Shown here: one piece after another, positions 17,901-50,190 of the stretch
Numbering within the stretch: the stretch's first letter is position 1
Layout of the letters: each line of letters starts with the position of its first letter
Origin: Oculina patagonica
Taxonomy: Eukaryota
Reading direction: 5' to 3'
DNA length: 64,000 nt
NCBI RefSeq assembly: GCF_052425735.1
Contig: NC_135762.1
Coordinates: 5,952,001-6,016,000 of the forward strand
Translations under genes and position numbers: made by a program
The notes under the pieces: generated by a model
Database searches by the model: none
What the model was told of the DNA's origin: nothing
The model's input: the letters and a program-made list of their open reading frames with translations, nothing else

Positions 17901-18062
17901 AAGACTTCAATGTTCAAGGCATTTATTTGATCGCGTGGGAGCTGGGTTCTATATGTGGTTTACATGTCTGTTACACCACGTCATTTGCGCAGTGCCGTGC
18001 CGCGCAAACAAAATGGCGGACTTCGCGGGTCCAACGGCACAAGTTTTGATTTAGCACCGACT
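17901..18062. promoter_or_regulatory. Bidirectional promoter between NAXD and FDXACB1
   Basis: Only 162 bp separate the divergent ATGs; CpG-rich; contains AAAATGGCGG (YY1-like) near 18010. Confidence 0.65.
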
Positions 18063-27838: not shown

Positions 27839-28627
27839 TATATACAGTACAGTCAAAGTCAAATCTTTTGTGAATATGGATACTGAATGTCCCGAGTGTC
27901 TCCATTGTAGAGTGGTTGGTCAGGTACACAGGCCATAATAATGATAATGTGCATATTATGGACTTAGGTGTTTGTGAGGTGAGGTTTGACTGTATATTTG
28001 TGCATAATTTAGGTTCATTATACTACAGTGTGTATAATTTTTTGTTACAGATCCTTTTGTCTGCAAGCTGTACTGATATTGATAGAGACAAAGAAAAACA
28101 CTTACTTTCTCATGGAGACTGGATTAATTGAATATATTAAAGGTCCCATTGACATGTTACACATTACAAGTTGAAAGGTATGAAATCAATGTTATGTTGC
28201 TACCAATTTACTCAAAAAGTGCAATTAGTTGTTGTTTATAAGTGAGTTTGTGTTGTTGTTTTTGTTTTTATCATATTAACAAAAAGAGTACATGTTTCTA
28301 TAAATCAAAATTTGTTTTTAATGTCATTAACTGTCCAAGTAAAGACCATCCTTAAAGATAAGAAGCACCTCAACAAAAGTAAAAAAAATAGTACATGCCA
28401 TGTACTATTTTTTGGAGACTCTGAAATACAGTAATGAGAACTTCTAAATGATGGCACATCTATTGATAAAAATAGAAATGTATGTAGTAAATTTATTATT
28501 ATTCATTAAGTGTTGTAGTCCAGGTTAGGGAAGTTTATAAAAGAACTGACAGTTCTTTTAAACACTACCCTCACCCAGATGATCACACTTAGCTGAACTA
28601 CTAATGTTCCTAGATTCATACCATTTA

Positions 28628-28803
28628 CAGTGGAACCCCGATATAACGATCTTTGATATAACGATATTCCCGATATAACGATGAATATGTTATGTCCCGG
28701 CAATAGTAAAATGTATGGGACGGAACCCCGATATAACGATTCCTCGATATAACGATATAATTTTACTGCCCCCTTGGCATATTGTTATATCGGGGTTCCA
28801 CTG
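28628..28803. mobile_element. Tigger/pogo-type MITE
   Basis: TA|CAGTGGAACCCCGATATAAC ... GTTATATCGGGGTTCCACTG|TA; internal GATATAACGA repeats. Confidence 0.8.
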
Positions 28804-28870
28804 TACTATGAAAATGTATGATGTTTTTGTTATACTTGAGTATTCAGTAAGTTACTTTTCGCTGCCTCCA

Positions 28871-30971
28871 TCATCCAGACTTCAGTGTTGTCTCTCCAGT
28901 GACAGCTAGCTTAGTGACATAAAATGAAATGGAAACATTGATTTTATTATACTGTTCAGTAATGTATACAATTCACCCTTAGTTTTACAGTCATTTTAGA
29001 ACATTATTTGATTATACAGTTTGCATTTCTGAATGCTGATCAGTTGAGAGTGTAAAAGATGTGAGCATGGTATATTAATAACCAAGCTGCAATGTACAAA
29101 GTTAGACAGGCAAAATTTTTAGAAGGCTTTGAAATTAAATGTTTTTTCAGCTATGACTTTAATAACATACAAGACGATAGATTTTACTCATAACAGCTTA
29201 AAGAGCTCTAGTCTCTTGACTAAGCAAGACCATACTTAACTTAGTTATTTTTTAGGTTATACTTTACTGGAGTTAGTCCTTCATGATATTTATGGTGGTT
29301 TGGTTTCAGTCTAACTTAACTTACCAGATATAAAATAGCTCTGTATTTGTCTCCAATTAATGCTGTCCTGAAGACTAAAGAAAAGAGAAGAGAAATTAAT
29401 AGGAGTATTTTGTTCTAACCAGGTGCAAATATATCAAATAATGTAGACAGAACTGGTTTAAGATGGCTTCATATGATTGTAGACCTTCCTATCACTGATA
29501 TCCTATCAATTCTATCACAGCAAACCAATAACATTGACAAAAACTGTTTAGCACGAATGTATGTAGCAGCAACCACTGATCAACATGAGATCACTGTGAT
29601 GCCAAAATTAATTAATTAATTAATTGCCAAAGCTCACAAACGTACTGTCTTTTTTGGCTAAATTTAAGGTTAGTTATTTATAACATTCACACTAACTCAA
29701 TCTTCTTCACCTCCCTTCAGAGGCAAATGTGTTTGTAAAAACTGTCAGTGGGGTTCAGAGACAGCTTCAGTTTGTAAGAATTGTGGTTACTCTGAAAGCC
29801 TTTGAGGAATTTAAAATGTCATTTTAGACATAAAAAGGCATCAAAAGGTTGAATCTTAATTTATTCCTTGACAAGTGCTCCAACATTTTGTACTACCGGT
29901 ATTTAATCTTTGTCAACATCTAACTGTGAATATAGAATGCCAAAGATGAAAAGGTCGAAAAGTACTGTCAACCACATTATTTTTTATTAATATGTTATTT
30001 ATAAATAATTGGAAACAATTTACCCAAATTGATATCAGCATTCTTTGAATGATGTGGCGATATTTTAACGTCAATCTCAGATGATGTTGACAAACTTCTC
30101 CTGGTTCACACAGGGATACTACCAACACTTGGACTGTGGGTCCAGGAATTCTGTTCTGGCATAAGGACTTTATTCGATGCAAGGGAACCTTTTTTAGGGG
30201 AAGAAAAAAGGTAAACTGTAATAAATAAACAGATTGAAAACTAGTGAACAAAAGGTTTGAACAGAAACTAGTCATTTCCAAACTAGTTTGCTAACCTGAA
30301 TCTTCTACTTATATAGTAGTTTTTCTGCAACTTATTTTTCTTATAGCCAACTGTAAATAGTGTAGGTTTTGTTTTTGATTTTATAGAGATTGTAAATAGG
30401 TTCTTATTTTTGTATTTATTGTCATGTTTGTAATGCGCATTTGATTATTTTATGGAAATGCAGAAGTTGTGTTATTATTATGAAGATGATAATTATTATA
30501 ATTTTATTACTGCATAATTATTATATACCACTTTGCAAACATCTTGCGCATTCCGTATTCTGAATTTTTCTTGAGTCTGTGCTAACAGCTGGAACTCCAC
30601 TGTAACACTGTCTTCAAGACAAAGAGGGTGAAAATGTTGAGTACACTGTTGGGTTGAGTACTCATCCCCAAATGAAACAAGATGAAGTTTTATTCCTTGC
30701 TGTTCTTCCATTTGTCTGATCCATGAAGATACCCTTCCCTAGAGAAGGGAGGAAAAAGATGAAGCAAATGGCAAATATGAAGCAAACAGCAAATATGATT
30801 TGAGCTATTATATAAAGTTTATATACTTAACTAGTTTAAAAATCTTGGATTATCAGATTGTGTTCTCTTCAGGCTACATTAGGTAAAGTTGTGACTCTAT
30901 TCTGCATTTCTTTCTTTTTAATGGAGCATTTTTAAATATGTATTTTTTATATACCGGTATATTTATACATA

Positions 30972-31046
<75 letters not shown>

Positions 31047-32720
31047 CCAAAACGTTAAAAGAAACCATAAATGAGATATATTATAAAGTAAAAATTAAAT
31101 TAATAGTACACATTGATAAAACGAACCATACATGCTGTATACCAGTACTTGACAGTCCAACAAATATGTTAGGATTTCTCTTATTAATAAAAATGTCAGT
31201 GGTAGGATTGACTCTACCTTTTGGGAATCTTCTACAAAGTATAATGAATAGCGCTTTTCATTTGTTGCTGGACAGTCTTGTTCTAATACGAAGAAGGATA
31301 GTGAGGTAGTCGTACATGGTATTTGCACTGATGACTCTGACATATCTGCAAAAGAGAGGTGGTGACACCTCAGTTATAGTATGTAACAAAGCAATTGGCA
31401 ACCAAACAGAAACAATGTAGGCTTTCCTAGGTACAATATTGTTGAATAAGACCTTGCATTCAATTGACATTTTTTGGCTGGTTCAACCTTGAACATGTGG
31501 CAAGTTACAGCTTCATCATCCTTGTGCGAGGGTACTGCACTAACTATACGTCAAGTAAGGTAGTTAATAGTTAAGGTAGTTTAAATTATTATGCTGTTCT
31601 TGTTGAAACAGTTTCAAGGTGTTTTAACTAGCTTTTAAAACTGTTTACAAATAAAGAAAAACAGTGCAGCTGGTGAAGAATTCTTGGCTTTATTTAACCT
31701 ATCATGTTCATCATTGATCTCATGGATACCAAAATGTGGCTAAATAACGGTACACTACTACCAGCACCCATACTTTTTACAGGGTTGCCACAGGTCAGGA
31801 AATGGTCAGGGATAAATAAAATTCTTCAAGGCCAGGGAAAAGTCAGGGAATTTTATTTTGAGTCAAGGAAAATTGACATCTTGAAGAAATGTCAGGAAAA
31901 ATTGGCTGGAAAAAAACATTTCAGGTCAATGTGACCTCTTTGGTCAAGAAAATTTTATTTTTATCAGGGAAAAGTCAGGGAATTTTGAAAACTGATGTCT
32001 GTGGCAACCATGTTTAAATTTGAAAGTAACATGTCTTGTGTCATAGTTGATCCACCTTGAAATGCTTCTCTTTGGATTTTAATGTCCGTTATGCGGCTAA
32101 TGTTGAACAGTCGATAGCGTGAGAACTAATTATTAGCAGCGGTACATGATGGCTTACTATAAATACTGAACTACCCTATCGAACCCTATCCTTGATAAGC
32201 ATAAACAAACACGACTGAGACCAAGATACTTACTACATACAGGAACCTTCGTTCCATCTCGTCCTGCAGCACCGGGAGTGCGTTGATCTATTGTTTGACA
32301 TAAACAGTCTCTAGATGACTGATTATCTCCAAGAGCTGGCTCTGGCGTTTGAGGAACCCGCACTAGTCCAGTTACAAGAGTCTCTGAAAGTGCCGAACCA
32401 AATGGTTCAGTTTCACTGGCAGACATTGTTGCCGACGCTTCGAGTGCCGAACTACCTCGTCTTTGTTCACGTTTTGTGTCGATCACCTTGCCACACAAGG
32501 GGCACTTAACATCAGTTGCACGAGCTACAGCAGTTCTACTCCTAGTGCAATCGCATGTCTCATTTTCGCGGAATGTATTATTTGTATCTTCCCCGTAAAA
32601 CGGTGATCGTTGTTCTGCAGATTGTGGTGTTGGAGGTTTCCTGTTGTCATCTTCTACAAGGGTTTCGCACGGCTGCTCGCCACTTGCTTCCCCTATTGCT
32701 AAAACCTCTTGTTGGTTCAT
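28871..32720 (-). CDS. Cytosolic UPA-like protein A (adaptor A): low-complexity N-terminus with CPLC, UPA-like domain, no death fold
   Basis: Exons 32720-32234, 31345-31218, 30738-~30529, 30188-30024, 29367-29325, 28905-28871, phases 1,0,0,0,1. Exon-for-exon paralog of the gene at 40202-43732 (LCLEDSVTVEF ~ LAIKDVLTVRF; RIPGPTVQV ~ RVFPGASVKL; both have a 43-nt exon ending YFIS/YFS). YSLYFVEDS...EEQQGIKL resembles the UPA segment of the neighbouring receptors. The start codon is uncertain. Confidence 0.7.
30972..31046. repeat. (TAT)n microsatellite, about 25 units
   Basis: Pure TAT/TTA run inside an intron of adaptor A. Confidence 0.95.
31780..32012. mobile_element. hAT-like MITE
   Basis: CAGGGTTGCCACA ... 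TGTGGCAACCATG; internal CAGGGAAAAGTCAGGGAATTTT repeats. Confidence 0.6.
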
Positions 32721-33641
32721 TTCTGTACTATCGGAGACTCCATCTGCATCGTTTGGAACTCCATCTTCCGCCTAAAACAGAGAAAAATGTTTAAGCATAC
32801 GTCAACTATCCTTCTGTCACCTATCGGAACAAATCTGCGTTCGTCCGCTTTCGTTTTGTTGCCATTGTGCTTCCCATGTATCGGGACCCCTTACGTACAT
32901 GTAATATCATGTACAGTTAGGACAACGGCATGGTTGGAAGGTCCCTAAGGTATATTTTGGGCAAAGTGATTCTAAGCATCAGTTTCGTATAGTTCCCGGC
33001 CGTGTATAGTTCAGTTGTGGAACTTCCGACATTGTTATTTCGAAAGTGATAGTGGGGAAAACTCCCTTCTTGGTCGGCTCGCTTGATTCGCCATTTTTCT
33101 TAAAATATAAAACGAAAAAAACGTCTTTACCACAGTGAAAGGCAAACTAAATTGAAAGGAACGCCTTCATTTACCGTATTGTTTCTTGTTTCTCTCGAAG
33201 TCATTTTAGTATCTTCGTTCTGATTCTTCGTAGCGTTTTATCTTTGACTTCAAGTACGGGATATTTTCATAAATGTCACCTGATATCAAATAGAAGGTGA
33301 CTGCTGATTGGGTATAATAATTCTTATTGTCTTTCAATAGAACGGATTGGTCAATTCGGAACGGGAAAACCCCCACCTTGATTCCACGAAAACGAAAGTA
33401 CGATTACGAATATTCTAGAATTAGGCTGGATTTTCACGATAGAAAAAGCATAAAAACTTGCAGCAGTTAATTTTGTCTTTTGTGAAAAAGCCTCGTACTA
33501 TTTTAAATATTATTTTCTTTGAGCCGCGTTTGGATAGTGATTGATATAGCCAGATATATTTATCGGTTTGTGTGACCAGAAGGGTGTCACTGCCGCCATT
33601 GAACAAAGTAACTCGCAGTTTACTCTGCCCAAGTCAACGGA
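32721..33641. promoter_or_regulatory. Divergent promoter region of pair 1 with kappaB-like and IRF-like sites
   Basis: GGGGAAAACTCCC 33054-33066; ATTGG (CCAAT) boxes near 33307 and 33346; GGGAAAACCCC 33363-33373; GAAAACGAAAGT (IRF-E/ISRE-like) 33388-33399. Confidence 0.55.
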
Positions 33642-36600
33642 ATGCGGATTTGGCAAATAGGAAAGTGTATTTTTATCTGTTTTATGGTAAGTTTATCGCC
33701 CTTTATTTTTTGACCAAAGAGTCAACTTAACAAAGAGTAGGGATATGTTATATTTTGAAATGAAAGCACGCTTATTGAATGTGAACATTGTTTTATGCTT
33801 TACCAACGATCTCAAATCCTAGATTATACAGACGAAGTGAATATTTCTTTGACCTGCTTTGCACCTTTTAAAATATGCAGACACACACAACCATTTTCAT
33901 GTTTTCCTACAGGTCAACCAAGCCTTTGCTGCACAGGTTTGCCAAGATGACCAACTTTCAGTAGAATTTCCAGATGGTAATATTACCTGTTTGAAGTGTC
34001 CAATCTGCCCTCCAGGATCTGGTGCAACGGCCCCTTGTGGCAGCACAGTAGCATACAATGCCTCAGTTGAGTGTAAAGATTGCCTGCCAGAGCACTATTC
34101 TGATTCATTCTCCTCAGAGAGTTGCAAGCCTTGCTCCACATGTATGCCAGATGAAGTCATTGTGGCAAAATGTACTAAACGTTCCGACACACGTTGTAGC
34201 TGCAAGCCTTGCCCAAAGGGGTATTACCGTAATGTAACTATGTCCAAATGCCTTCCTTGCTCAGGCTGTTGCCTGGATGGTAAGGATGTTGTCGTGCCAC
34301 AGTGTGTAAGTCAAGGGATGCCACAAACTCAATCATGTAGTTACCACAAGAGTAAACCCTGTAGGTCCAAGTGCTGGTACGATGAGATGACAATTAAAAA
34401 ACATGGTGGCAAGCACATCTGTTTGCCCTGCCCAGTTTGTTCTAATGAATTTGGCCTTACCAAGCCTTGTGGAGGCTTCATTTATGATGATGTGGTTCCC
34501 AAATGTGAACGGCCCACTTTGGGGAAAACGTTTATTAATCAACAAGGGATCCTGCAGTCTTGCAAAACCTGCTCAAATGGAGAAGAAGTCATTGTCAATT
34601 GTTCTGCTAAATCTGATACAATTTGTGGTGGATGCAAGCCAGGTTTCTACTTTAATGATCAATCAAAGAGCTGTGAGGAATGCTTTTGGTGTTGTAGCCA
34701 TGGTGACAGTCAGAAGATAAAGAATTGTATCAGAGAAGGAATGTTATTTGCACAGGTTTATCATACTTCTCTACCCAGACAGCTTCTTTTGCCATCGCAA
34801 GTTAATATGCAACTTGGTCAAGTTAATCAAGAACAAGGATATCTAATGGCTTTCTTGAAACTTGATAAATCAACAATCAGTGCATCTGGTGCTTTTTTAA
34901 TTATGTTTCTCTTGGCTATAAGTTTTTTTGTTCAAAGAAGAAAGGATTATGGAAGTAAAGAAGGAAATGTTAATAATTACGAAACAATGGAGTGTATGCC
35001 ACCACAGAAAAAATGCCTCCCCGAAAATATAGAAACAGAGCAAACTAGTGGTGAGTTAAACTATTAACCATTCATTAAGGCTTTATTTTTTGTGTGTGCA
35101 ATGCTTTTTCTCTTTCGGTGTACATTGCTTTCCCCTTTATTCTCAGCTTGATTGCTTGAAAAGAACATTTTCTATCTCCATTTTGTTAGTTGTCATTTCT
35201 TTGTGAAGAGATAGACACTATCAACTGTACCCTGCCTCTTTAACCATCTTTGTTGTAATATTTAGATTGTGCATTGTTAGTCTAATTATTTTATATATAT
35301 CTGTGTATGTTTTGATGATATATTGTACTCTTTATAGATTCCAAGGAAGTGGACTCGGAATACCCTGTAAAACACAGTCCTGGCCATGTAGTATTTGAGA
35401 AGACAGGAGTTGAAGTTATTTCTCTTGATAGCAACAAATCTGCCCTTCAACATGTGGCAATTAGTGATTTCTTTTTGCAAGCCATTTCAGACTGCCTGGA
35501 TTTTCCTGGTTTGCTTGAAGATGGTGAGTTGTGTCTTAGCCCAATTATAAATTTTTTTTCAAGTACCAAGTTGGATGGACCCCTTGAGGTTCAGATACCC
35601 CATGGTGCAAATATGGTACTCTCAAGTAAGAAGTGGAAAGTCATTCTGAAGGAGTTCCGAAACAACAAGTGGGTTGTTGTTAGTGATGTGGATGGGCATG
35701 GAGTAAAAAAGTTTGTCCCTAAAAGCAACCATGTCAGTTTTGAGACAGATCACCTCTCGACATTTGCAGTTGTTGGATACTGTGATAAGAATTCTTCATC
35801 GTCAGTGTTGAAAAGAATGAAAGTTATGGCATTCTGCAGTGAGACCAGAGTTGGAGAAGATCTTGTTGTGAGGCTGTACTGCTTTGATGATTGTGAATGG
35901 TCCTTTGAGGTAAGCTTTTGAGATATGCAAGGTCCTTTTACATAACACTGGATTTTTGGTAGGGCTTGTTTAAAATTGGTCCACCAAAGCTAATAAACTA
36001 CCTACGGTACTTAGATAGTCCAACCACAGATAAAAGTGGAAACCGGCGGCAGTTTTATCTGAACCCTGTGTAGTGTAAATGGGCCCCAAAATACATAAAT
36101 CTGTCTAGTTTTGCTATTCATATCCTTTCCTGTTTCTTACAGGGAACACGCAAAAATAGTGGGTAGGTGTTAAAACTCCTTAAATGAAGTACTGGGGAAT
36201 TGAGGTGATAAAGAAGGGTATAAATGATCACATGGCTTGAAGGAGGGACCACAAATAGTAATATTATAACTCTTTGCTCATTAAAAGTCACTCCATAACT
36301 TCCAATAACATCCTCAGCCACATGGCCTTTGGGTATAGTCTTCATTTGTGGTTATGTTACTTTGTTTAAAGAAAGGAGGGATGTATTACACTGAACATAA
36401 CGTCTGTCAAAAAGCATGTTACTTTATTGGTGCATGTATCTCTTTACCTTCTCTTTACGAAACAGAGACTGATGAAAGCAGAACAGGAGAAGGGAGGAAA
36501 GCTTATCTCTTCAATTGAATCTCTTGATTTTTCTGTTACTTGTGAAGAAGATGTGGACATCGCTGTTAAGGATAGTGGTGACTGGAAGCTTGAAAGTGGT

Positions 36601-38657
36601 TGCCCAACGGTACCGTGTGCACATTTCTGTTTGTAATGCCAAGACCATGTAGTATCCAGCATGAGGAAAGAGAACGTTTGTCTCACTTTGATTACAAACT
36701 GTTCTATGCCTAATTTAATTTGGTTTTACATGTTAAGCATAGTGGAAGGCCCTGTGTGGTCATAACTTCGTAAGGTAAAATGTCTGGAATTTAAGTGTTA
36801 TTCTAAAACACTTTGTTCTCATATTTTAAGAAATAATGCAACTGTAGCATATTTGTTTGTTAAAAACACATGCTAAAGCATGTTGTTAAGAACACTTAAA
36901 CGTTTAAACTTTAGGCCCCGTTTACACGGGTCCGGACAAATTTTTGCACGGACAAAAACTTGCACGGTTCCACCTTGCGTTTACACGGGACCGGCGGAAC
37001 TGGACGAATTTTTGAACGGCAAAGTGTGCAAGTTTGGGACCTGAAAAAAGCAGGTCAAATTTTTGACCGGCACGGTTCCATATTTCGTACGGACTCGTGT
37101 AAACACCCGAACCGTGCAACTTTTTGCACAGATAGCGCGGTTAAGGCCTGGAATCTAGTTATATTTTGCCTGGTTGCTTAGCAAAAATGAAACACTTTGT
37201 TGCATTATGCCCCTATTTTGTTACATTTTGTTTTAAAAATTTAAAAATTTGAGGCAAAAGAAACCCAGAAAGCAGTTCACAGATATGAGAAGACGAGCGG
37301 CGGTACGTCGGGGGAATTTCTCCTTGTCGTTATGAGGGTACTTTTCCAAAAACATTTTGGTAACGTCTTCGTACTTGCTCCTGACCGTTTCCCAATCAAC
37401 TCCTTCCCCTGCTTTTCTTGCTTTGTAGTCTATAACTACATTAAGCAACAAATTAATTTCTTCATCAGACCACTTAAAGTTCTTGTCTGCCGCTTCTGCC
37501 GCCATGTTTGATTTGCCGCGTGCTGCATTAGCTGCAACATGATTAGCTTAAAATATTAGCGATAACCAATCACAACAGAGACGTAAAAAAGCCATTCAAA
37601 TGCCGCGACTGGTCTAAAATTTGCACGGTTCCGTGTAAACACCACTGTAATCTGTAACAAAATTTGCACGGATCCATGTAAACAGGCGGTCCAGGTACAA
37701 AATTCGTCCGTGCAAAAATTTGTCCGGACCCGTGTAAACGGGGCCTTAGATTATCATCTAGACTTTGGGTTCATTTTGTGATCTAATATTTTAGTCACAT
37801 CTAGTTTAAAATATGTTCTTTTTATTCCACCTCTGTCTATAGAACCTCAGCTACACATCACTGAGAAACTCATTCAGCATAACCCCTCAGTGTAATCTAG
37901 TGTTTAAAGCCACAAGTGTTGAAGGGAACAGCAGCTTCTTTGTTACAATTGTGTTAACTCAGTCATCCAACCAAACTGTGATGTATGCAAGTACTGCTAT
38001 CAAAGAGGTAAGATTTATACTGTCTTACTGCCTTGTTGTAGCTATCAGATTTAAGTTAAAAGCAGATAAATTTATTGTTTTCTTATTTCAGAATCCAACT
38101 TTGCATATGAATCTAAATGTGATCCCAAATATCATGAATGGTAAGTAACCACAAAGGGTGTCAGCAGGCTGTTAGATGCTGTCAAAGTAATCAGAGACAT
38201 TTCATTTACCAGTACCTTAATCTTGTCCATTTTGGTTTCATTATTTCTAAAGACATAAGAGCTAATTAAGCTACCATTCCAGTAACAAAGAATCAGGGTA
38301 TGATGAATAAATTGGGCAAAGATGTTAACCAGCCAGTGATGCTGTCTGATTAGCATCCTTGTTGCATTTCTACGAAGCTGAAATACCATCATTTGTTTCA
38401 ATTGAAAAATTGTTCCAGGAAATAATAAAATAAAAAAACACCTCAAAGATGAGTTGTGCCTTAAGTCCCTCAAGCACTGAGCGTTCACTGACTTTTCTTT
38501 AGTGGTCAGGCATGTACATGAAGTCTCAGCTGAGCCTAACAGTTCATTTTTATTTTTTTCAGAAGGGTGTCAGAAGTCGGAGGTGGTGAATACCACTATG
38601 GCAAACCATGGAGAACAGAGAGAAGATGTCTTTACCAACTGCATTATTCAGTTGTAG
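33642..38657 (+). CDS. TNF-receptor-superfamily protein A: signal peptide, duplicated TNFR cysteine-rich ectodomain, TM, ZU5, UPA; no death domain
   Basis: Exons 33642-33686, 33913-35050, 35338-35909, 36466-36609, 37843-38007, 38092-38140, 38563-38657 in phase. Signal MRIWQIGKCIFICFMVNQAFA; CRD motifs CPICPPGSG..PCG, CKPCSTC, C...SDTRC; TM ASGAFLIMFLLAISFFV; ZU5 LSPII..PLEVQIPH..DHLSTFAVVG; UPA KRMKVMAF..VRLYCFDD. Confidence 0.85.
36914..37745 (-). mobile_element. PIF/Harbinger deletion derivative retaining a Myb/SANT-like ORF fragment
   Basis: About 40-bp TIRs GGCCCCGTTTACACGGGTCCGGACAAATTTTTGCACGGAC; TTA TSD on both sides; ORF 37505-37233 FKWSDEEINLLL...VDWETVRSKY is a Myb/SANT-like N-terminus. 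Confidence 0.85.
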
Positions 38658-39198
38658 TTTTATCATAATTACCTTGTAGTGTAATAAACAGTAAACAAAT
38701 AGTAACCTTTCTAGCTCTGGAATTATCTGTTTCAAGAAAATAACCAGTAAACTATTACCTTCAAGGAGCAGGTTAAATTCATGGACATGGGGATGAATTT
38801 TAATATTATAATGCCATATTCCATTAAGCTCATTTTATTTGGCACTGTGGGTGTAAATCCAGTAAATTACCTAACATTTCAGAACCTGTTAGGCTAAAAT
38901 TTTATTTTTAAGCACCCTATACATAAGAACCATTTTAGGCTAAAATTCTAAAACAGGTTCTTATTTTCAAAAAAAGAAAAAATAATCTTCTCAAAAATAT
39001 AGTATTATCATGTTATGTTGTTTTGTATACAAGATTTATTGGGAATCATAGTGAAGGTTACAGTATAGGTTTGATTCTAACAGAATCAGATTAAAATAGT
39101 ATAGTATTTTGCTTACCGAAGCCTCCAAGAATACTGTTATTGGACATTTAAGACCAGATCATTTAAAAATTCTACTTTATTCCTTGAACAAAAGTTAA

Positions 39199-39830
39199 GG
39201 TGATTCCACTGAAATAAAAGGAGTATTAAAAATTTTCTGAAACTTGGTCCAGGTTACAATTATGTTATGAGCATTAAAAAAATGAAATAAAAAATGGGGG
39301 TCACCGTGCTAGTTTTTGTGTAAAATGGATGGGCATTATAGTAAATATACGACCCGCGAGGAAGATATTGGGAACCCTAGTAATTCGAATGGGGAACTAT
39401 TGTTTCTAGAAAAAAATCATTTTTGCATTAAAGTATTAGTCTATTTCAACAAAATAGGCCTTGATCTTATATTATTGTACAGGAATTAAGATAACGAAAG
39501 AAATTAAAGATTTTGCTTTGTGCGCACGTTAACGGCACTACCTAAAAACGTTTTTTTTACGGCATTAAAATTAAAATATCTCAATGTAGAATTTTAAACT
39601 TTTCTTTAAATCGCGTTATATTGTAGACAACCGTATGACATTTAAATTAATGCATTAAAAAACGGGGGTCACCGTGCTCGTTTAAGAGAAAACGACCATT
39701 TCTTTCCCTACCGAGCGTAGGCTGAAGGGAATCTCGTAGTGTTCTGTGTGCGCGCGCGCTCGTGCGCGCGCTAAATGACGCGAAAACGTATGCGCAGCAA
39801 GGATGCGCAATGCAATTCCGTGGAATCACC
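39199..39830. mobile_element. TTAA-targeting non-autonomous DNA transposon (Kolobok-like)
   Basis: TTAA|GGTGATTCCAC ... GTGGAATCACC|TTAA. Confidence 0.7.
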
Positions 39831-40201
39831 TTAAGAACCTAATTAAGAACCTAGTGAGCCTAATTTTACACTAAATACCTTTTATATAAGAACCTGTTTA
39901 GGCTAACTTGAAAAAACCTAGGTTCTCATATGCGGGTTAATAACTGCTTTTCTAAAGAAAAGTTTTAATTATTTTTTTTGTCATTGTCTGTCAGGCCACC
40001 AGGCCACCAGGCCACCAGCTTTTTATCAGTGGGAAGGAACTTTATTCACAAGATTTGTGTACAATCAAATGACATTGTGCTAAAATCAATTGAGGCAATA
40101 CCACTATAAGAGCAACAAAGTTATACAAAACTTAAATTGGAGTTCTTAATTGCTTAACAATGAACACTGACATAACAAAAAGACACAACAAATGGTATTG
40201 A

Positions 40202-43200
40202 TTATTTTTTGCCGTTTTCATACAGTTGCAAACGTTTTTTTACCAAAATCTTTGCAGCCTCTTGATTTTCACGTGATTTCTGCAAAATTGATATGAAAAT
40301 ATCCAAAATGTTCCCTTTCTTTGGAATAACCATAAGAAGCTGGTCAACACGATCTGCTGGACGTGGAAAAGATCTGATAAATGCTTTATCATCAGCAGTT
40401 AAGATGTTGTACTGATAAAGGAAGAAACAGATGGATGAAAGATCACCAATACTTTCAATCAGATCCACATGACAGCTCTGTAAAGTATCTCTGTCCAGTT
40501 TTGGCATCGCTGTTACTATCATTTGAAAAAAAAAGGAACAGCTGATAATTAACTTCTAATTGATTTTGTTTCCAGTTTACAATGATTCAACACAATCATG
40601 CACATAATGATAGAAGTAAAACACTGTAAAAGCACTTTTTTGCAGTAAATAATCTGTAAAATTGAATAAATAAATTTAAAGGTGGCTCTCTGTGATTTGG
40701 ACCATTTTTAAATGTGACCACAGCTAGCCCATTTATTTTGTCGTTACTGTACACTCTATTTCTTACATGGGAAAACGAGCTGATAATGATGGTGTACACT
40801 GACATCATTGAATAGCCAATCAATCAGTCAGGTATAGCCATGCACAGCACAGCACATCACATGGTTCTAGATTATGGGTAGGGGAGACGTTATTAGTAAT
40901 GACATTTTTTTACACTATTACTACATGTACCATATACAATTCATTTAAATTGCAAAACACATATAAGCTGTAAAGAAGTGATAAAAAGGTTCAATAACTA
41001 TACAGTAATGCATAACAATTAATTGGCAAAACACCTTTTATCTTATAACAGTACATTTTTTACCTGAGAAGTATTGCCACAAAGAGTGAATAACTGGCGT
41101 ATGAGACTAAAAGTGAATAAACAATAACAAGCGTTTAGTCCAGAATAACGTTATCTTCATTATTTAAATGGGTGGCATATGTGGCATACTGTAATTATAT
41201 CTATGTAATAAATGCCTGTTACACAGGTCCAAACTGTATGATACTTTATGTGTTATAAATAAAGTGTAGTCAAAAATTGCAACTGAAAAAAATGTATCGA
41301 AATTGTTTCAGTGTTTGTCTTGAAAAGAGCCTTACTGGAACAGTTCAAAGAACACAAACCATACCTTGGTGGGAATAATAATGAGAAGCTTTGCATTTCC
41401 AGTCAACAGGGTCATCCTCACTCTGTCTTCCTGAAGTGCGTTTTGCTCCCCGCTGTATTTAATGGAAAGCTTGACAGAAGCACCAGGGAAAACTCTTTCT
41501 TCACTTCTAGCCAAGATGTGTTGAACATCAAACGTCGACACCTAACATGTGACAAATGTTAACTTTTAAAAATGTAGCAGGTTCTAATCGATTGTTATTT
41601 TTTTCAACATACCAAAAATAAAGTACAGTATTACAGATCTTTTTAACTGGTAGATTCTTTAACAATTAAGAGACAGGCGCATTTCTTAAGGCATACTGTT
41701 CCGGATTTTCCTATCGAATGTTTACTACTTACATTTGCATTTGTAACTTGTCACAGATTTAATACAAGTTGATTCGTATTTTCTGAAAGTGTCAGTAGTG
41801 AGAATAGAGCTTTTAAAATTATACAGTGAGTTGATCTTTGACGCAATGTACTTTACACTTATTTGAAACCTATGCTAACACTAAATTAAATCAACAGAAA
41901 TATACGTACGCCAGCTGGGCTGATTACGGAAAAGCTTTCCCCGTGATCCATCTCAAATCTTACTGTTAACACATCCTTGATGGCCAGTTGGAGATGATGC
42001 GACACAAACACGGATCCGTTTTCTTCAATCACTACCGCGATTTCGGTTCCCTCATAAGCAGCAGCCTCTTCTTGGCTTATTTTAGCAAATACCTAAAGCA
42101 AGGGATCAATTTTGTTTTCAAATTGACTACATACTTAAATTTGTAAGTGTATCTAGTATATACTTATTTATAAGCGCTCAACGGAGTCAATTGGGTTAAA
42201 GTAAGCGATATTAGGGCTTTCCACAAGTTGCTCGGCAACTTTTTGGCAACTTTTCAGGATTCGAGCAACTTTTTCCCCTTCGAGCAACTTTTTTCCACTC
42301 GAGCAACTTGTTGCATTTTGGGCAAATTACAGACCGAAGATCTCCGAAGGTTATCCGAGCGTTGTTCACAGGCAATACGAACTTTTCCGAAGATTTACGA
42401 AGTTTGCCGAAGACTTTCCGAGGAACATCGAAGTACGTTTCAACTTTCTGCTCTTTCTGGTCCTCTTTCTGCATTAAAACATTACAAACTCGTCAGCAAA
42501 CATGACGTCATCGACTTCACGATTTTTCTCAGTTAAAGAAATCCTTGTTATTTAACAAATTTTCCCCTTAATATGTTATTAAGATACTCCTTTTGCTGAA
42601 AAATTGCACAAAACTGCTTAGACATCTTACCCTCAAAGGGAAACTAGCATATATTTAGAGAAATTATCTTGATTAGAAGCAACGTTTTGGATTTTTTGGA
42701 GCAACTTTCAAACAACTTTTATTATTAAAAGCAACTTTTTCGGATTTTTGGAGCAACTTTTGAGCAATTTTTTGAGAAATTACGGGCAACTTTTTGAGAA
42801 ATCTCGAGCAACTTGTGGAAAGCCCTAAGCGATATCGTCTTGTTTTCCTATCCTGTGAATTAACTAACATACAATCTGCAAGGTCATAGATTTTTTTTCC
42901 CAATATACACATTATAAAAAGCAACAGCTTACCAAGTGAAACCTTTCACATGGAATGAAGTAGATGGTGAAACTCGGTTCCTTTCTTGAGAGAATGCCCC
43001 TCTTGAAGACCGCCAAACGGACTTCGAGACATTCGTGGCTTGATTTCAACTTATCTAAAGAAATAAACAATGGAAGAATGAAGATAGAATATGTATTGAA
43101 AAAAGAAACAGCAGACGGGTCTCACTTCATCCTCGGGTAAACGGTTTTGCGAGTAACGAAGTGGCAAAAGGTATTACTTGAATCAGTTAATCAAGAATAC

Positions 43201-43732
43201 AATATTCTAGCGGGGAATTGATGAAGCTTTTTCAACAATGTTTAGAGTACGTACCACAAGTTCGGCAATTATCGGGTTCTCCATTTTCGTCATGTCCTTC
43301 AGTAGGCGTTTTTGAAAGTTTACTCCAGAGGCTTTGAACTTGTCCCAAAGATGTGGGGCATCCAATAGCTAAACTCTCTCCAACGCCCTCTTGTAGCGGT
43401 AGACCTGAAGTGGTATTTTCTGTCGACAAATGTTGCATAGAGGTCGTGATCAACTGCATGGAAGGGTCGTTTGGTGGAATTCCCTCTTGGCTGTCTGGGT
43501 TCATTCCTTCCGTATCGTCTTGAGGAGGATGGTACCCCTCGCGATGGTCGCTACTTCGAATAACTTGTGAATGATGCGAGTTGTTACTGTTCGTGGACAG
43601 ATTCCCGTTACATATTGGGCACGAAATGTTAACAAAGCCTCTGGAAGGTATTTGGACGACTCCACAGTTGGCGCAATCTGCCTCGACCGCTCTTCCGTAA
43701 TTGCCAAAGCCAGCTGTGTTGTCGTCCATCAT
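40202..43732 (-). CDS. Cytosolic adaptor B: Zn-ribbon (CxxC-x14-CxxC), disordered linker, UPA-like domain, C-terminal CARD
   Basis: Exons 43732-43255, 43054-42933, 42092-41910, 41541-41365, 41106-41064, 40509-40202, phases 1,0,0,0,1. The last exon (LQSCHVDLIESIGDLSSICFFLYQYNILTADDKAFIRSFPRPADRVDQLLMVIPKKGNILDIFISILQKS) has a six-helix CARD pattern. Confidence 0.8.
42212..42827. mobile_element. hAT MITE in intron 2 of adaptor B
   Basis: TIR TAGGGCTTTCCACAAGTTGCTCG; perfect 8-bp TSD AGCGATAT (42204-42211, 42828-42835); subterminal GCAACTT arrays. Confidence 0.9.
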
Positions 43733-44557
43733 TACTGAATGCTTTACAAGAGTGAAACGGAACAAGGGAAATGAATACACTCCCCGAAACTTACTCCTTC
43801 ACTCCCCATGATTAAACTGATGAATATTTTTGGCGATGAAAAGAATTTATTTCGCTTTGCTGAAAAACCACCTTTCAGCTCCGCCAATGACAATCGAGAG
43901 ATAAGTCATTCTGTGATATGATTGGTTAACTAGAGACATGAGTGGTTGGGGGATTCCCCAACTTCTGGAGTCCTGTCATAGAAATAGTCGCGCTTTCATT
44001 TGTGTGCTCCATCCCACGTCTTGCTCCCTGGAACATGCGTCGAATGCTTTAATCTACAGATTTTTCATCGTAAGTAGAACAAAATTTCTTACATTTTATC
44101 CTAGAAGCCTGCTTAAAGAACGTGCGACTGACTGCATCTGGAATCTGCAGTAATAACCTGATCTCCGGAAATGTCAAATGAACGCCACGTTTTCAAACAG
44201 ACTCATCTAGAAGAAAAAAATGTTGTCTTTTATGTAGTTAAAAAATTATCGCTTCTGCTGTCGTTAAAGCAATTTAACATAAAACAGTTTGTCAAAATGT
44301 TCAAAGGAAGCAGTTAAGATTTGAACCATGCATGCTTCCCTGTAAACAGTTTTCGAGGCGAGGAAGTAAAGCGAGGATATTTGTGCTGAGTAATCAACTT
44401 CTAAAACAATGACGTCTGCTGAAAACTCGATTCGTCAGCACATTTTGGGCGCTTATTTATCCAACGATGCTTAGTGTGCATTCTTATCATAATTGTGATT
44501 TGCAAGTTGCTTTAGTCAAGATCGTAATTTTTTGCAGGGCCTGGATGTGTGGAGATC
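43733..44557. promoter_or_regulatory. Divergent promoter/5'UTR region of pair 2 with a kappaB site
   Basis: CCAAT near 43884, ATTGG at 43921, palindromic kappaB site GGGGATTCCCC 43949-43959. Probable non-coding first exon of receptor B ending at GTAAGT near 44070. Confidence 0.6.
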
Positions 44558-47500
44558 ATGGCCAAGTTGACGGTGCTTCTCGTCCTACTAACGTTATTCG
44601 TAAGTATTTCCGCTTGTGTAGTCTTACCGGGAATGTTCATGGCCAAAATGTCATTTTCAATACAAATTTAAGAATTTTTTAGATAGGGAATCTGCTTAGA
44701 AATTCGGTAAAGATGAAGCAAAAACGATTACAGGGAGTATAACCATGTTTTTGGTACTTGTTGCTGAGTTAGGGCCAGCTCTATGGCAACCAGTTCAACA
44801 ACTACACAAATTATAATACACTGAACAGTGAAAACAATCAAGAAAAGTGGAACAACAAAAAGCCTAAATGATACTCACTCTTGCCTCTTGACAAAGCATG
44901 AACCGAGTATCAAAAAACACTTATCCCTGTGGTAAACATCTTCCAAAGGTTTTTAGTCTAACAGTTACATGTATATTACAGATTTTTAGTATACAATCTT
45001 TATTTCTTTCCCACTAGCTATCCTGTGCATGTGTGTATTCACTGAGGTGCAGGTTCAACCAGTTCACAGTTGAAAACGTGTTGGGCAATTTGTCTTGTAT
45101 TGACTGCCCTGCTTGTATGCCTGGATATGGTTTGAGTCCACAATGTGGTAATTATGTAAAATATGGTACAAAAATTGAGTGCAAACCATGCAAACTGGGG
45201 ATGACATACTCTGCTACACATAACATTGAATCATGTCGCCCATGTGGAATTTGTTCAGACCATCAAAAAGTGATAAGGAACTGTACTTTGGAATCTAATT
45301 CAAAGTGTAATCACAGCTGTAGCAAAGGGTTCTATTATGAGGAAGTGACAGGTGACTGTAAAGCCTGTTCATTCTGCTGCAGTGATGGGAGAAATACTGT
45401 GAAAGATGACTGCAAGGATATGCCATTTTATAAACAGTGTGATGCCAATGAGATCATGATCAACTGTCAGCCTAAATGTCAAGACGATCAATACCTAGTT
45501 GTAACCAAAAAAGGTGCAGTGCCATATTGCAAAAACTGTAAAAACTGCCCACCGGGATCTTCACTCTCTCCACATTGTGGAAGTATTGTAGAAAACATCA
45601 ATGACATCAAATGCGTAGAGTGTATTGAAGGCAAGACATTTTTAGAAAAGCCAGGAAACCAACCCTGCAGACCATGTTCTTCATGTTCAGTTGGACAGAA
45701 AGAACTGAGACCTTGCAATCTGACCCATGACAGGGTTTGTGGCAGATGTGAGAAAGGTTTTTATAATGCAACCGGCAATGAATGCAAACCATGTTCAGCC
45801 TGCTGTAACGATGAAAATGATGTACGTATTCCTGAATGTGTTAAACAGAATATGCCAAGAAACAAACAGTGTATTTTAACCCAGCGAGCCATCAATGTGT
45901 GCCAACAGAATAATGCTCAGCATGGCGGCAGTATAATCCAAGCAAAATCTCCTGGTCTAATCATAGCAATGTCCATAATAGCAATAGGATGCTTCACCGC
46001 ACTTACAGTAATGGTGTTCTGGAAGTACTTGAAGTACCGCAAGTATAAGGGGCTGCCAAGAAGCCAGTCATTAGCTGAGTTATTGCCATCATCACTGGAA
46101 GGTGAGGTTTTTATTTTCGACACCTTATTTTAATCAACATCACATAATACTTAATGCACTATTAATAGTTACTTAATCCAGCCTGTTTTATTCCTGGTTT
46201 TTAGTCAAGCCACAAAAGAGAATTAACTTTTAATTGTTGACACTAGCCCCTTATGTAATTATTCTGTTTTCTAACCAAAACAGTGCCAAGAAATTATTAA
46301 TGGAGCTAATTGCTAAGACCTCCTGACAATATCATATGAAATAGATATGTCCAATCTGAACTTTTAATAATATTGTTATAATTAATGGTATAATGATAAA
46401 AAACAATAATAAGAATCTCAGAACAAAATCTCTCACTCAGAAATTATTATAAAGAATCCACAAGCACTCTGCAATTACCCTTTCAAAGATGGTTTACATG
46501 AAAGATAAAGGATTACCTAATATATCTTGTAAGAGCTATAAATTGTTTTTGAATGAAATTAGTGTTATTTCTTTTATACTGCCTATTAAATCCCCAACCT
46601 CCCCACTACAAAGCAATGATACTAAAGAAACTTAAAAACCTTTCCACTTTTATTCTCCTTAGAACCACAAACTGAAAGTCACTCGACAACACTGGAAGTT
46701 GCTATAGCTCATGGCTCACAAGAGTCTTTGGCTTTTGAAAAATCAGGTGTATTAGTCCAGTTCAGTGATGGACAAAGTTTCTTTAATGATGCCCAAGGAG
46801 TTAGACTAGAAATATGCTGGGTCAACAATTTTGTCAAGACACTTCAACCTGGTGAAGTACAGCTTAGTCCAATAATAAAATTTCACCCTTATGAATTGCA
46901 ATTAAGCAAACCAGCACAGGTCAAAATACCGCACAGTGCCTTGGTTTTTTACAGTAATGGCTGGGATGTCAAACTCAAAAGCTCTACATTACATGGAGAA
47001 AAGATTGTGTGGAAAAATGAAGAACAATATGAAGTTCACAACAATGAAGTTAGCTTTCATGCTGACTACCTTCTTTCTTATGTTGTGGTTGGTGCATCAC
47101 TTTGCAATGACAAACCAACAAAGAAGCGTTTGCAGTGTGCAGTCTTTGGAGGAGAGGGCAGAGTTGGTGCAAACTATACAGCATATTTATATATCTTTGA
47201 TGACTGTGAGGCATCACTAGAGGTACTTTTCAGATAGATTGTGTGGTTCACAGAAAATTTCCATACTCACCCTGCAGTACTGAGGGATTGGAAATTTCTT
47301 GGGGTCGGAAGGGTTTCCAAGGCCAAAAACTTAAAGGAAAAACCTTGGTAGGGGAGCGTATTGGAAATTTATGGGACAACTTATGTACTGCAGCTGGAGA
47401 TTGGTTACCCCCCCGGTATAATACAAAAACTATTATTGCTATGGTAGTCATGGATGCATGTTGTTAGGTGTATATAAGGGAGTGTGTTAGACAGTTCCTG

Positions 47501-50190
47501 GAACAACGTTATAAAGATATTATAATTTTGGATATTTTATAAAGTCTTAAGTGGTCAAAAGAAATCCCGAAGGCTTAATTTTATGCAACTAATCTCATGA
47601 AAATTGACACAGTGAACTAGTACACAATGCCTTTAAGAAGGGCAATGAATCACATAAAGGGAAAGTTAATGATTGAGTGAGAATAGTTTAGTCTGCATAT
47701 AGTTTTTGGAACAGCTTACTAAGGTCACTAACATATGGTCATATCACTATTTTGAACAAATGAAGAGCTATGTCATATTTGTATTGTAACTTTCAACTAA
47801 AACAACCACTGTCATATCTACTTACCACAATGTTAATGTATTCTGGGTATGGAAAATTTAAAACCCCAATAATAGCATTTTGATCATTGAAAGGACTTGA
47901 AATCCAAATCTTACAACCCTTACCTTAAGTAAGTTGCATTTTGTACGTGCATAACTGACAGTAATTTGGAATTTAGTGGCACAACAACTCTATACTTTCT
48001 ATAATCTTTAGTGTGTCTGAATTCAAAGGACATCACTATCAGCTGCACTAATTTTAAAAGTAAAATAAGACTGGTTTTAACAACATAGCTTTTCTTGTTT
48101 TATTTAACAGAAAATCATGCAAGAAGAAAGATCACATAATAGGATCCTGTTGGGTTCCCCGCAGTCTCTGTATGTGGAGTCTGTAACTGAGACGGATATA
48201 AAGATTTCTGTTAAACAACCTGTTGATGGTTGGATTGTTGGAGAGATCAAGCCAGAGGTAACTTCTTCATGTAGTGTCTGTTTCTGTACCCTAATTAATA
48301 GAAGAATTAATTTAATTCCATTATATCTGGCAAATAATGGGCTCCAAGTCTTTGGATTTTTACTGTCAGTTGGTCCAAAAATTAATTTATAATTATGCCT
48401 GTTACTTAGATAGGGAAATTACAACAAATGGCCATATAACTGACAAAACAAATTTTATACTGGGCAACTTAGTCCTTTTCCATTTTTGAGAATTTAAAAA
48501 AAAATTATAGCTCAGATCCTGTATACTGAAGGTACAAGGGAAAAGTCATTATTCAAATCAAATTGGTAATGCTTCACCCCTTAATCTTTTTTTCCAAAAT
48601 TTGAAAAAGAGACTACTAATACATGTATAATTATGAAGACTACTTGATAAGTTGCAGCAAAATAAACAGAGGCATCCAAAGAATTCTGTTGAGCTAAAAT
48701 TGGTTGTGTCACGATTGTGTTGTTTGTATTCTCACAGGTTATAACACACAAAAGTGTGAAGGAATCCTATCAAACCATACCAAGGACAGAGATACTGTTT
48801 AAACATGACAATGGTCGGAACAGAGACTTCCTTTGTATATTTGAAGTCAGCGCTGGAAATACAACCACAACTATTTGTGCGGTTACCTCAATCAAAGAGG
48901 TTTGTGTTACTTGATTTTCTATTAATCACTCAAGTACTTAATTTGATTTTAGTTGGTGCAGTGTGTGTTATATACCAAGCAGAATGTTACATTGTATACC
49001 ATAAGATTCAGGTCATTATAAGCCCCCCCCCCCCCACTTTATAAATCCTCCCAGTTATAAGCCCCCACCCCCAGACATAAGCCCCCATCCCCAGACATAA
49101 GCTCCCCTCTGCTGGACAGGGCTAAATGTTGCTTTACTATGACTTTCTAACTTAAAAACATATTTCGATCAACACTGCTGTGGCTTGTTTCAAAACGTTT
49201 TTTTTTTTATTCTGCTAATAAGACCCCCGCTCCCCCCGTCCCATTTATAAGCCCACCCAAAACACCTTACAGAGTTTTATAAGCCCAGGGCTTATAACCA
49301 GAATTTAACAGTATGGTGCACTTCGTCTGTAGTAAATCTCTGGTATTTGATTTATAGGATCCATTTAGGAGGTTTCAGGAGTGCAATCCAGGATTTAGCA
49401 ATGACAAGCACCGGCTGGTAACTGGAAGGAATCTGTGTGGTAAGTCCGTAGCATGTGCAGGGACATGACAAATAATACTATTATTAAAACTATTTTTGAC
49501 CTTCAGGCTTTTGCTAAATTTGTTTTCCCAAAAGAGGTTTGCCACACCCCCAGATCCACCACTGCAGTTACTCTTGCAGTGTAACCTAAGGTTGGTAGAG
49601 CTCTTCCCTTAGCCACCAGGTCATTTAAGAAAATGACACACCCAGCATGCACATTGACAACAATCATTTTTGGCTTACAGATCCTCTATGTATTTTATAA
49701 AACATTCTTAAAGTTATGATTGCTGCAAAAACCTTATAAATTAAGGAAATAAACTATTTTTTCACTCAACTGCATTGCCTATTGGTTTGTAAGACATCAC
49801 CATGTTTGTTTTATAACATGTAATTTATTATTGTTGTTTTGTTCTTAAGACCCCCTGATCACCGACCAAGAGAGATCATCACCTTGTCTGCATGATCTTC
49901 CAGAGGAGGTATTGCATGCTGTGTGCATGAAACTGGACATGCCACTTAAAGGTGTTGGCAACTGGCGACATGTTGCAGCAGACCTTGGTTTCCCAGAAGA
50001 GCAAATTCAGGTTTTCCGAAATGAGATGTTGACTCCTGATGGAAGTCCTTGTACTGTGATGTTGTATGCATTGAAGACTAGGTCACCGAATCTTACTGTA
50101 GTAGAGTTTGTGCAGATTCTTCAAACTCGAAAAATTAAGCGCTTTGATGTTGTAGATGTCCTTGAGCCTTATGTTTATGACCCAATTTAA
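44558..50190 (+). CDS. TNF-receptor-superfamily protein B: signal peptide, duplicated TNFR ectodomain, TM, ZU5, UPA, death domain (UNC5-like cytoplasmic region)
   Basis: Exons 44558-44599, 45018-46101, 46663-47222, 48111-48257, 48738-48899, 49358-49439, 49850-50190 in phase. Signal MAKLTVLLVLLTLFLSCACVYS; TM LIIAMSIIAIGCFTALTVMVFW; ZU5 LSPIIKFHP..PAQVKIPH; UPA KKRLQCAVF..LYIFDD; DD LD...GNWRHVAADLGF...SPCTVML...TVVEFVQIL..RFDVVDVL. Confidence 0.9.

Follow-up and report, generated by a model that had tools for sequence, protein, structure and literature searches.

Head-to-Head Gene Pairs for TNFR-ZU5 Receptors and Adaptors with a Predicted UPA Domain in Oculina patagonica

Organization of the Locus

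A 64,000-nucleotide stretch of Oculina patagonica DNA (contig NC_135762.1, positions 5,952,001 to 6,016,000 of the forward strand), referred to here as the window, contains two adjoining gene cassettes, each of which pairs the gene of a type I membrane receptor with that of a cytosolic adaptor read in the opposite direction. The window sequence is AT-rich, eukaryotic, and gap-free. The four genes are located in 28.6-50.2 kb of the window in the order adaptor A (- strand), receptor A (+), adaptor B (-), and receptor B (+), and RNA contigs from public runs reveal that all four are transcribed and spliced (Table 1). An earlier sequence-only reading of the window had proposed this order, with the start codons of the two pairs ~920 and ~830 bp apart. 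The RNA joints and gene models bear out the arrangement, and the measured distances are 922 bp in cassette A and 826 bp in cassette B. The RNA evidence consists of assembled, unstranded contigs from the public runs that were mapped onto two 6-kb stretches, and their depth is not an expression measure. All introns of the mapped joints are GT-AG after correction of the reported cut offsets.

Both pairs diverge from a region of less than 1 kb. In cassette B, one contig follows the adaptor B exons through 44069 and then crosses a + strand GT-AG intron to 44538, which is 20 bp before the receptor B ATG. The loose end at 44070 matches 44539-44567, and the joint features GTAAGT at 44070 and CAG at 44535-44537. 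The adaptor B and receptor B transcripts therefore overlap or abut at their 5' ends. In cassette A, ~350 bp separate the 5' untranslated region (UTR) exon of adaptor A from position 33586, the 5'-most base known for the receptor A transcript.

Table 1. Positions of the cassette genes, their exons, and the synteny anchor in the window
Feature	Position	Strand	Product and basis
Adaptor A coding region	29357..32771	-	335 amino acids (aa) in the RNA-supported form; RNA joints, translation, profile match
Adaptor A exons	32234-32771 (ATG 32720), 31218-31345, 30529-30738, 30024-30188, 29325-29374 (stop 29357-29359), then 28909 downwards	-	
Adaptor A last exon	28600..28909	-	3' UTR in the form with the 50-nt exon; joint 28909|29325 (run X1)
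Adaptor A 5' UTR exon	33174..33237	-	joined to 32770/32771; joint CT..AC, run X1 only
Receptor A	33586..38950 (coding sequence 33642-38657)	+	719 aa; Pfam, RNA joints, model
Receptor A exons	33642-33686, 33913-35050, 35338-35909, 36466-36609, 37891-38007, 38092-38140, 38563-38657	+	
Adaptor B	39900..44070 (coding sequence 43732-40202)	-	438 aa; RNA joints, Pfam CARD, full-length orthologues P0011, P0013, P0027-P0032, P0044
Adaptor B exons	43732-43255, 43054-42933, 42092-41910, 41541-41365, 41106-41064, 40515-40202	-	
Cassette B shared divergent promoter/5' region	43255..44069	.	unstranded RNA contig and loose-end match
Receptor B	44538..50190	+	805 aa; Pfam, model, orthologues with TNFR_c6, ZU5, UPA, and Death matches
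Receptor B exons	44558-44599, 45018-46101, 46663-47222, 48111-48257, 48738-48899, 49358-49439, 49850-50190	+	
BMT5-like methyltransferase exon	17955..18641	+	Pfam PF10354, 3e-35; synteny anchor with the Nematostella locus

Receptors

Receptors A and B feature, in order, a signal peptide, TNFR repeats, a membrane span, a ZU5 domain, and a probable UPA domain. Receptor B then ends in a death domain and receptor A in a tail of 31 residues. Pfam searches determined that TNFR_c6 (PF00020) is present in both 1.1-kb + strand exons (1.5e-19 and 1.3e-20). Each protein has a hydrophobic N-terminus and a single membrane span, at residues 335-355 in receptor A and 327-349 in receptor B. The exon after the TNFR exon carries the ZU5 domain (PF00791), which is matched at 4.2e-8 in receptor B and at 0.0022, below cutoff, in receptor A. 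The death domain (PF00531) of receptor B is located at 49912-50187 (3.2e-6). Pfam is silent on the UPA domain in the window exons, and full-length orthologues from Stylophora, Orbicella, and Pocillopora carry PF17217 matches that are flagged as weak. The two receptors are 29% identical across 674 aa (E value 1.5e-78).

The seven coding exons and common intron phases that had been claimed for the two receptors stand, the phases being 0,1,0,0,0,1. The penultimate exon is 49 nt in receptor A and 82 nt in receptor B, where it precedes the death-domain exon. A 43-nt alternative for this receptor B exon (49746-49788) was dropped, as Stylophora and Pocillopora conserve only the 82-nt exon in frame and flanked by both splice sites. 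RNA joints cover E1|E2 (33686|33913) and E6|E7 (38140|38563) of receptor A, the 3' UTR of which reaches at least 38950, and the 5' UTR joint of receptor B. For the other receptor joints, placement relied on GT-AG sites, the reading frame, and conservation in orthologues. An upstream ATG at 44545, out of frame, overlaps the receptor B start (44558) in the spliced 5' leader and is a possible upstream open reading frame (ORF).

The junction between ZU5 and UPA differs between the two receptor types. The HFS or SFS autocleavage motif of ZU5 proteins such as PIDD1, UNC5CL, NLRP1, and CARD8 corresponds to HLS in receptor A and to YLLS in receptor B. The receptor A junction reads DHLSTF (35751-35759) and is the same in the A-type gene of Stylophora (L003 19391-19960). 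The junctions of receptor B (DYLLSY) and of the Nematostella receptor (KLGVAY) differ, and His-x-Ser is missing from B-type and Nematostella receptors. Only the A-type receptor may self-cleave as PIDD1 or UNC5CL do.

Adaptors

Adaptor B features a disordered N-terminal part, a UPA-like domain encoded by exons 2-4, a 43-nt exon, and a final exon with a CARD (PF00619, 5.4e-7, minus strand 40205-40522). The helical C-terminal domain in a whole-protein AlphaFold2 (AF2) model matches the CARDs of Apaf-1, caspase-9, and CARD8. No death domain was matched by Pfam in adaptor B or its orthologues. Cassette B thus ends as the sequence-only reading had described, with a death domain in the receptor and a CARD in the adaptor. 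Among the proteins searched, the nearest CARDs outside the coral family are found in frog (Hyla, Eleutherodactylus) proteins that carry 7-12 tandem CARDs together with FIIND and UPA-FIIND domains (P0006, P0025). A minor adaptor B joint, 41539|41611 (run X1, depth 19 vs 253 for the main joint), would keep part of intron 3.

In adaptor A, a CxC...CxxC motif is found in the N-terminal region, exons 2-4 encode a UPA-like domain, and there is no CARD. Six exons had been described for each adaptor, with phases 1,0,0,0,1 and a 43-nt exon in both. The six exons hold for both genes and the phases and the 43-nt exon hold for adaptor B; adaptor A has phases 1,0,0,0 and a small exon of 50 nt. Three RNA runs contain the 50-nt form, the acceptor of which precedes by 7 nt the frame-keeping AG needed for a 43-nt exon. 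This shifts the frame and leads to an early stop, so that the protein ends ...SSGQH inside the small exon. With the 43-nt acceptor, adaptor A would read DSINWRQIQSYFIS, which resembles the small exon of adaptor B, and would end AVTGETTLKSG (stop 28871-28873). The start of the last exon of adaptor A resembles the first residues of the adaptor B CARD exon. Either acceptor results in a protein that lacks a CARD. Of the two short tails proposed for cassette A, the receptor tail (EGCQ...CIIQL) is confirmed by RNA and the adaptor tail AVTGETTLKSG is replaced in RNA by ...SSGQH. Additionally, contigs span the adaptor A intron 29375-30023, which points to some intron retention. A long AAT/ATT microsatellite at 30958-31054, which appears as poly-Asn/poly-Leu in ORF lists, is located within intron 2 of adaptor A.

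Adaptors A and B are 20% identical in pairwise comparison and are barely alignable. A profile of the adaptor B family aligns collinearly with the middle domain of adaptor A (22 bits, conditional E of 1e-8), and a multiple alignment of the adaptors reveals common motifs through exons 2-4. The N-terminal regions carry type-specific motifs. The disordered region of adaptor B features a SNSHH.QVRRS.D.REE motif at residues ~47-66 (window ~43535-43594, -), which is kept in the B-type adaptors of Orbicella, Stylophora, Pocillopora, and this window. A-type adaptors across species keep a zinc-ribbon-like CxC...CP.C(G/S)K motif (window 32480-32560; P0002-P0004; L003 22219-22746; L004 24225-24638). The adaptor B of this window has a similar motif, but a zinc ribbon as a feature of the adaptor B family was considered and dropped, since it is missing from the B-type adaptors of other corals.

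The Middle Domain of the Adaptors

The adaptor middle domain is predicted to have the UPA fold. Orthologues were found by a database search with the CARD exon, which returned full-length spliced proteins, and by further searches, which contributed Stylophora, Pocillopora, Orbicella, and Montipora proteins; all are labelled uncharacterised. Searches with exon 1 of adaptor A returned unspliced ORF calls only. A sequence-profile search of the PDB with the adaptor returned CARDs only. An AF2 model was made of the domain alone, using residues 187-362 of the orthologue P0032 and a 16-row alignment, with a predicted local distance difference test (pLDDT) score of 68 and a predicted template modelling (pTM) score of 0.64. 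In the PDB, this model superposes best (VIA-align) on residues 689-828 of UNC5B (3g5b), its UPA domain, with a Z of 9.3 over 129 residues. The next UPA superpositions are ankyrin-B 1290-1423 with a Z of 7.6 and the rat NLRP1 FIIND with a Z of 6.8, and generic beta sandwiches are found at Z 7-8.6.

UNC5A-D/unc-5, SH3BP4, MACC1, UNC5CL, and ankyrin-1 account for 29 of the 30 best matches in the Swiss-Prot AlphaFold models, and the aligned residues in the UNC5, UNC5CL, and ankyrin rows are those of the UPA region. In the AlphaFold DB clusters, the B-type adaptor of Stylophora and a 327-residue UniProt entry rank first and UNC5-like proteins come next. Look-alikes found by a language model for the middle domains of the coral and Nematostella proteins all belong to UPA/FIIND families, with scores that serve as leads only. 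The earlier proposal of a UPA-like adaptor domain is therefore borne out by the predicted fold of an orthologue and by structural searches, and not by sequence.

Conservation and Duplication of the Pair

The pairing was compared in three robust corals, Stylophora, Pocillopora, and Orbicella, and in Nematostella. Head-to-head pairing is present in all four, and the annotated gene ends of the conserved pairs are 408-740 bp apart. In Stylophora pistillata, a B-type receptor (804 aa; TNFR_c6, ZU5, UPA, and Death) is located 416 bp from an adaptor B (461 aa, CARD) on the opposite strand. The next ZU5-UPA gene (412 aa) is closest to receptor A, with 51% identity in ZU5, and is located 424 bp from a gene with the A-type CxC...CxxC motif, so that the arrangement is that of the window. 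Pocillopora verrucosa has the four genes in the same order as Stylophora, and its A-type receptor retains TNFR repeats. The receptor B and adaptor B genes of Orbicella faveolata are separated by 740 bp and adjoin an orthologue of adaptor A (365 aa); assembly gaps hide the rest. Montipora also has the adaptor.

Nematostella vectensis has a single head-to-head pair, 408 bp apart, which consists of a 790-residue TNFR-ZU5 gene (ZU5 match 7.6e-16) and the CARD gene LOC5517729. The terminal exons of LOC5517729 are 183 nt, 174 nt, ~31 nt, and a phase-1 CARD exon, as compared to 183, 177, 43, and CARD in adaptor B. A BMT5-like gene follows the Nematostella pair, and the BMT5-like exon of the window is located on the corresponding side. 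The single pair in Nematostella implies that the pair predates the anemone-coral split. Additionally, the separate A- and B-type orthologues in corals, set beside this one pair, imply that both genes of the pair were duplicated together before the sampled robust corals diverged, which agrees with the unit duplication that had been proposed from the window itself.

The adaptors diverge much faster than the receptors. Receptor B is 69-80% identical to its Orbicella counterpart and adaptor B is 35-55% identical. The adaptor B of this window is ~42% identical to that of Orbicella, which in turn is ~50% identical to that of Stylophora. In Pocillopora verrucosa, parts of the annotated B-type adaptor protein match the first exon of the adaptor in the A position (L006 23133-23557) at 60-100% identity, more closely than the protein matches the first exon of the B gene itself (77%). 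Possible causes of this likeness are gene conversion, chimerism in the gene model, and a fault of the assembly.

Origin of the Adaptor

The adaptor exons 2-6 and the receptor, each taken from the start of UPA to the end of the gene, have four introns with phases 0,0,0,1. By our reading of the alignments and of the strands of the model, the introns are positioned as follows. The first follows the first beta hairpin and precedes a K-I-x-Q-x-E-like stretch, the second follows the next three strands, the third follows the last strand, and the fourth follows a short linker exon before the death-fold exon. The chance of the phase pattern is ~0.04 by our own estimate. These results suggest an origin of the adaptor by inverted, partial copying of the cytoplasmic part of the receptor, with a CARD replacing the death domain. 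As sequence similarity between the adaptor and receptor UPA domains is undetectable, the evidence for this origin is the fold and the intron phases.

An alternative is that the two genes are neighbours by descent only: an inverted partial duplication produced the adaptor, a compact bidirectional promoter kept it in place, and the two proteins work in separate pathways. The short conserved spacing and the 5' overlap fit promoter sharing, and the faster divergence of the adaptors points the same way. Against this, the pairing has lasted since anemones and corals split, both genes were duplicated together, and both members of the same copy lost their death folds, all of which fit a functional unit better than a chance neighbourhood. 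Descent without a shared function is a serious possibility but a minority one.

Loss of Death Folds from Cassette A

No death-fold exon is spliced onto the cassette A transcripts that were seen, and none is detectable nearby, which agrees with the sequence-only reading. A six-frame search of 20000-40200 with CARD and death-domain profiles was negative for remnants of either fold. A-type orthologues that lack death folds are the 412-aa ZU5-UPA gene of Stylophora and the 365-aa adaptor A of Orbicella. In the 327-aa UniProt entry, UPA is located at 156-321 and the protein ends right after the domain. The accession pattern suggests that this entry is the CARD-less A-type adaptor of Stylophora. Together these observations support a matched loss of death folds from both members of cassette A.

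The same loss could mean that cassette A is a decaying duplicate and that its genes are pseudogenes in the making. The frame-shifting acceptor and intron retention of adaptor A, and a Stylophora A-type receptor model that lacks TNFR repeats, are in line with decay. Both genes are, however, transcribed and spliced with long open frames, the same truncated architecture persists in the orthologues of Stylophora, Pocillopora, and Orbicella, and the DHLSTF junction and the CxC...CxxC motifs are conserved. Decay is considered very improbable.

Comparison with Known Systems

The tail of receptor B has the same order of ZU5, UPA, and death domain as UNC5, UNC5CL, PIDD1, and the ankyrins. The UNC5 ectodomain is made of Ig and TSP domains, whereas the coral receptors have TNFR-type ectodomains, and receptor A lacks the death domain. 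To our knowledge, no counterpart of the adjoining UPA partner gene is known in the UNC5, UNC5CL, PIDD1, or ankyrin families. TNFR1, Fas, p75NTR, and coral TNFRs (PMC4979521) resemble receptor B in having TNFR repeats, one membrane span, and a C-terminal death domain. Receptor B differs from these death receptors in that ZU5-UPA is inserted between the membrane span and the death domain.

The sequence-only reading had compared the pair to the PIDDosome (PIDD1-RAIDD-caspase-2), which likewise features a ZU5-UPA-DD (death domain) protein with a CARD adaptor. The analogy is a poor fit, since RAIDD binds via a death domain of its own, whereas Pfam matches none in the coral adaptor. Any coupling between receptor and adaptor therefore cannot occur between death domains and must use UPA or the N-terminal region. 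The same reading had also been reminded of the head-to-head NLR pairs of plants, such as RGA4/RGA5 and RRS1/RPS4, in which functional pairing is proven. The plant pairs also consist of two immune-type genes with a short shared divergent region that were duplicated and retained. Their protein families are unrelated to those described here, and the coupling in corals is inferred.

The closest known parallel of the adaptor is the cleaved fragment of CARD8 and NLRP1, rather than the full FIIND-CARD architecture. As established previously (PMC3210808, PMC7794386), CARD8 and NLRP1 self-cleave between ZU5 and UPA, the UPA-CARD fragment remains bound to the ZU5 part, and the freed UPA promotes UPA-CARD oligomerisation and CARD filament formation. 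In this fragment UPA is directly followed by the CARD, as in adaptor B. The adaptor differs from CARD8 and NLRP1 in that it is encoded by its own gene, has an N-terminal region of ~160 residues, has no ZU5 and no autocleavage, and has no Pfam FIIND or UPA-FIIND match. CARD8 and NLRP1 hold ZU5 and UPA in one polypeptide, whereas the candidate ZU5 partner of the adaptor is the membrane receptor of the neighbouring gene.

This parallel allows the adaptor to be read as a free-standing, inflammasome-like effector that resembles the released UPA-CARD of CARD8 or NLRP1 and whose control would lie in its long N-terminal region (through degradation, for instance) and be independent of the receptor. The direct succession of UPA and CARD and the amphibian multi-CARD FIIND proteins, which hold the nearest CARDs outside the family, agree with this, and the SNSHH.QVRRS.D.REE motif could be an N-terminal regulatory site. 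A free-standing effector nevertheless leaves unexplained both the conserved pairing with a ZU5-UPA receptor and the parallel loss of the CARD and the death domain in cassette A, and it is regarded as quite unlikely.

Each of the domains is known. What seems new is the TNFR ectodomain on a ZU5-UPA-DD tail and the fixed pairing with a stand-alone UPA-CARD gene. The sequence-only reading knew of no description of paired TNFR/UPA-CARD modules, and likewise neither the TNFR-ZU5-UPA receptor architecture nor the gene pair is described in the full-text literature that was searched, which has most subscription journals outside its scope. The invertebrate TNFR surveys that were searched do not mention ZU5, UNC5, or UPA.

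Proposed Mechanism

The reading held with moderate confidence is that the receptor and the adaptor of one pair act together. The orphan UPA of the adaptor would dock onto the ZU5-UPA module of the receptor, as in the ZU5/UPA contacts of the NLRP1/CARD8 UPA-CARD fragment. Ligand-driven clustering of receptor B would then gather the adaptor CARDs, which would attract a caspase with a CARD or some other CARD partner, alongside signalling by the death domain. Pair A retains the ectodomain, ZU5, and UPA, and because it has no death-fold output it would be a modulator that adjusts, competes with, or diverts signalling and does not trigger death. The sequence-only reading had similarly proposed that each cassette would be a co-regulated module, with a non-apoptotic or decoy pair beside a death-competent one.

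Several observations weigh against this cooperative reading. At the level of the adaptor domain, Pfam UPA (PF17217) and UPA-FIIND (PF23679) gave no match at E<=1 with P0011 and P0013 and none at E<=10 with single exons. A whole-protein AF2 model had a pLDDT of 46 and was set aside; Foldseek searches with it gave CARDs and generic beta sandwiches, and no UPA. The domain model that was kept comes from an orthologue ~42% identical to adaptor B and from an alignment of 16 rows, and it contains a disordered loop. Comparison of the adaptor domain with receptor ZU5-UPA or UPA alignments by hhalign gave probabilities below 1%, no better than 200 column-shuffled controls. On the receptor side, the middle exon joints of both genes lack RNA support, and the last exon of the Nematostella receptor is not recognised as a death domain. 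The A-type receptor model of Stylophora (412 aa, L003 19970-21521) has a membrane-span-like segment and no TNFR repeats, possibly because the ectodomain was lost in this lineage or because the model is incomplete. Finally, conserved divergent gene pairs can persist by promoter sharing alone.

A more specific form of the cooperative reading is a FIIND-like switch that is split over two genes. The ZU5(-UPA) part of the receptor would hold the UPA-CARD of its neighbour in trans, and ligand binding or cleavage at the junction would free or cluster the UPA-CARD, which would lead to a CARD filament. The A pair would be a built-in antagonist in corals. Gated by a membrane receptor, the system would be a forerunner of the NLRP1/CARD8 and PIDDosome platforms and would already have existed in the anemone-coral ancestor. 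This version is put forward tentatively and is unlikely as it stands.

If both proteins cooperate, TNFR death receptors, UNC5/PIDD-type supramodules, and UPA-CARD inflammasome fragments are joined in one ancient module. Such a module would provide an evolutionary starting point for UPA-driven CARD assembly, and the genes would be candidates for coral apoptosis and for stress and bleaching responses; the expansion of coral TNFRs is known but unexplained. The idea lends itself to direct testing, both through the natural contrast between pair B with death folds and pair A with none and because the tractable Nematostella has a single pair.

Other Features of the Window

A tblastn search found no further cassette copies elsewhere in the window; only the TNFR and ZU5 exons were matched, and the adaptors are undetectable by tblastn. 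The flanks contain a FAT-like cadherin-repeat exon (4590-5720, -) and a retroelement integrase ORF (57537-58310, -), which are unrelated to the cassettes. In all RNA runs, contigs with depths of hundreds to thousands and many loose ends are found at 28600-28800, 31800-32000, 38700-39900, and 42100-42900. These high-depth intronic and intergenic stretches look like expressed repeat or transposon families that are separate from the four genes.

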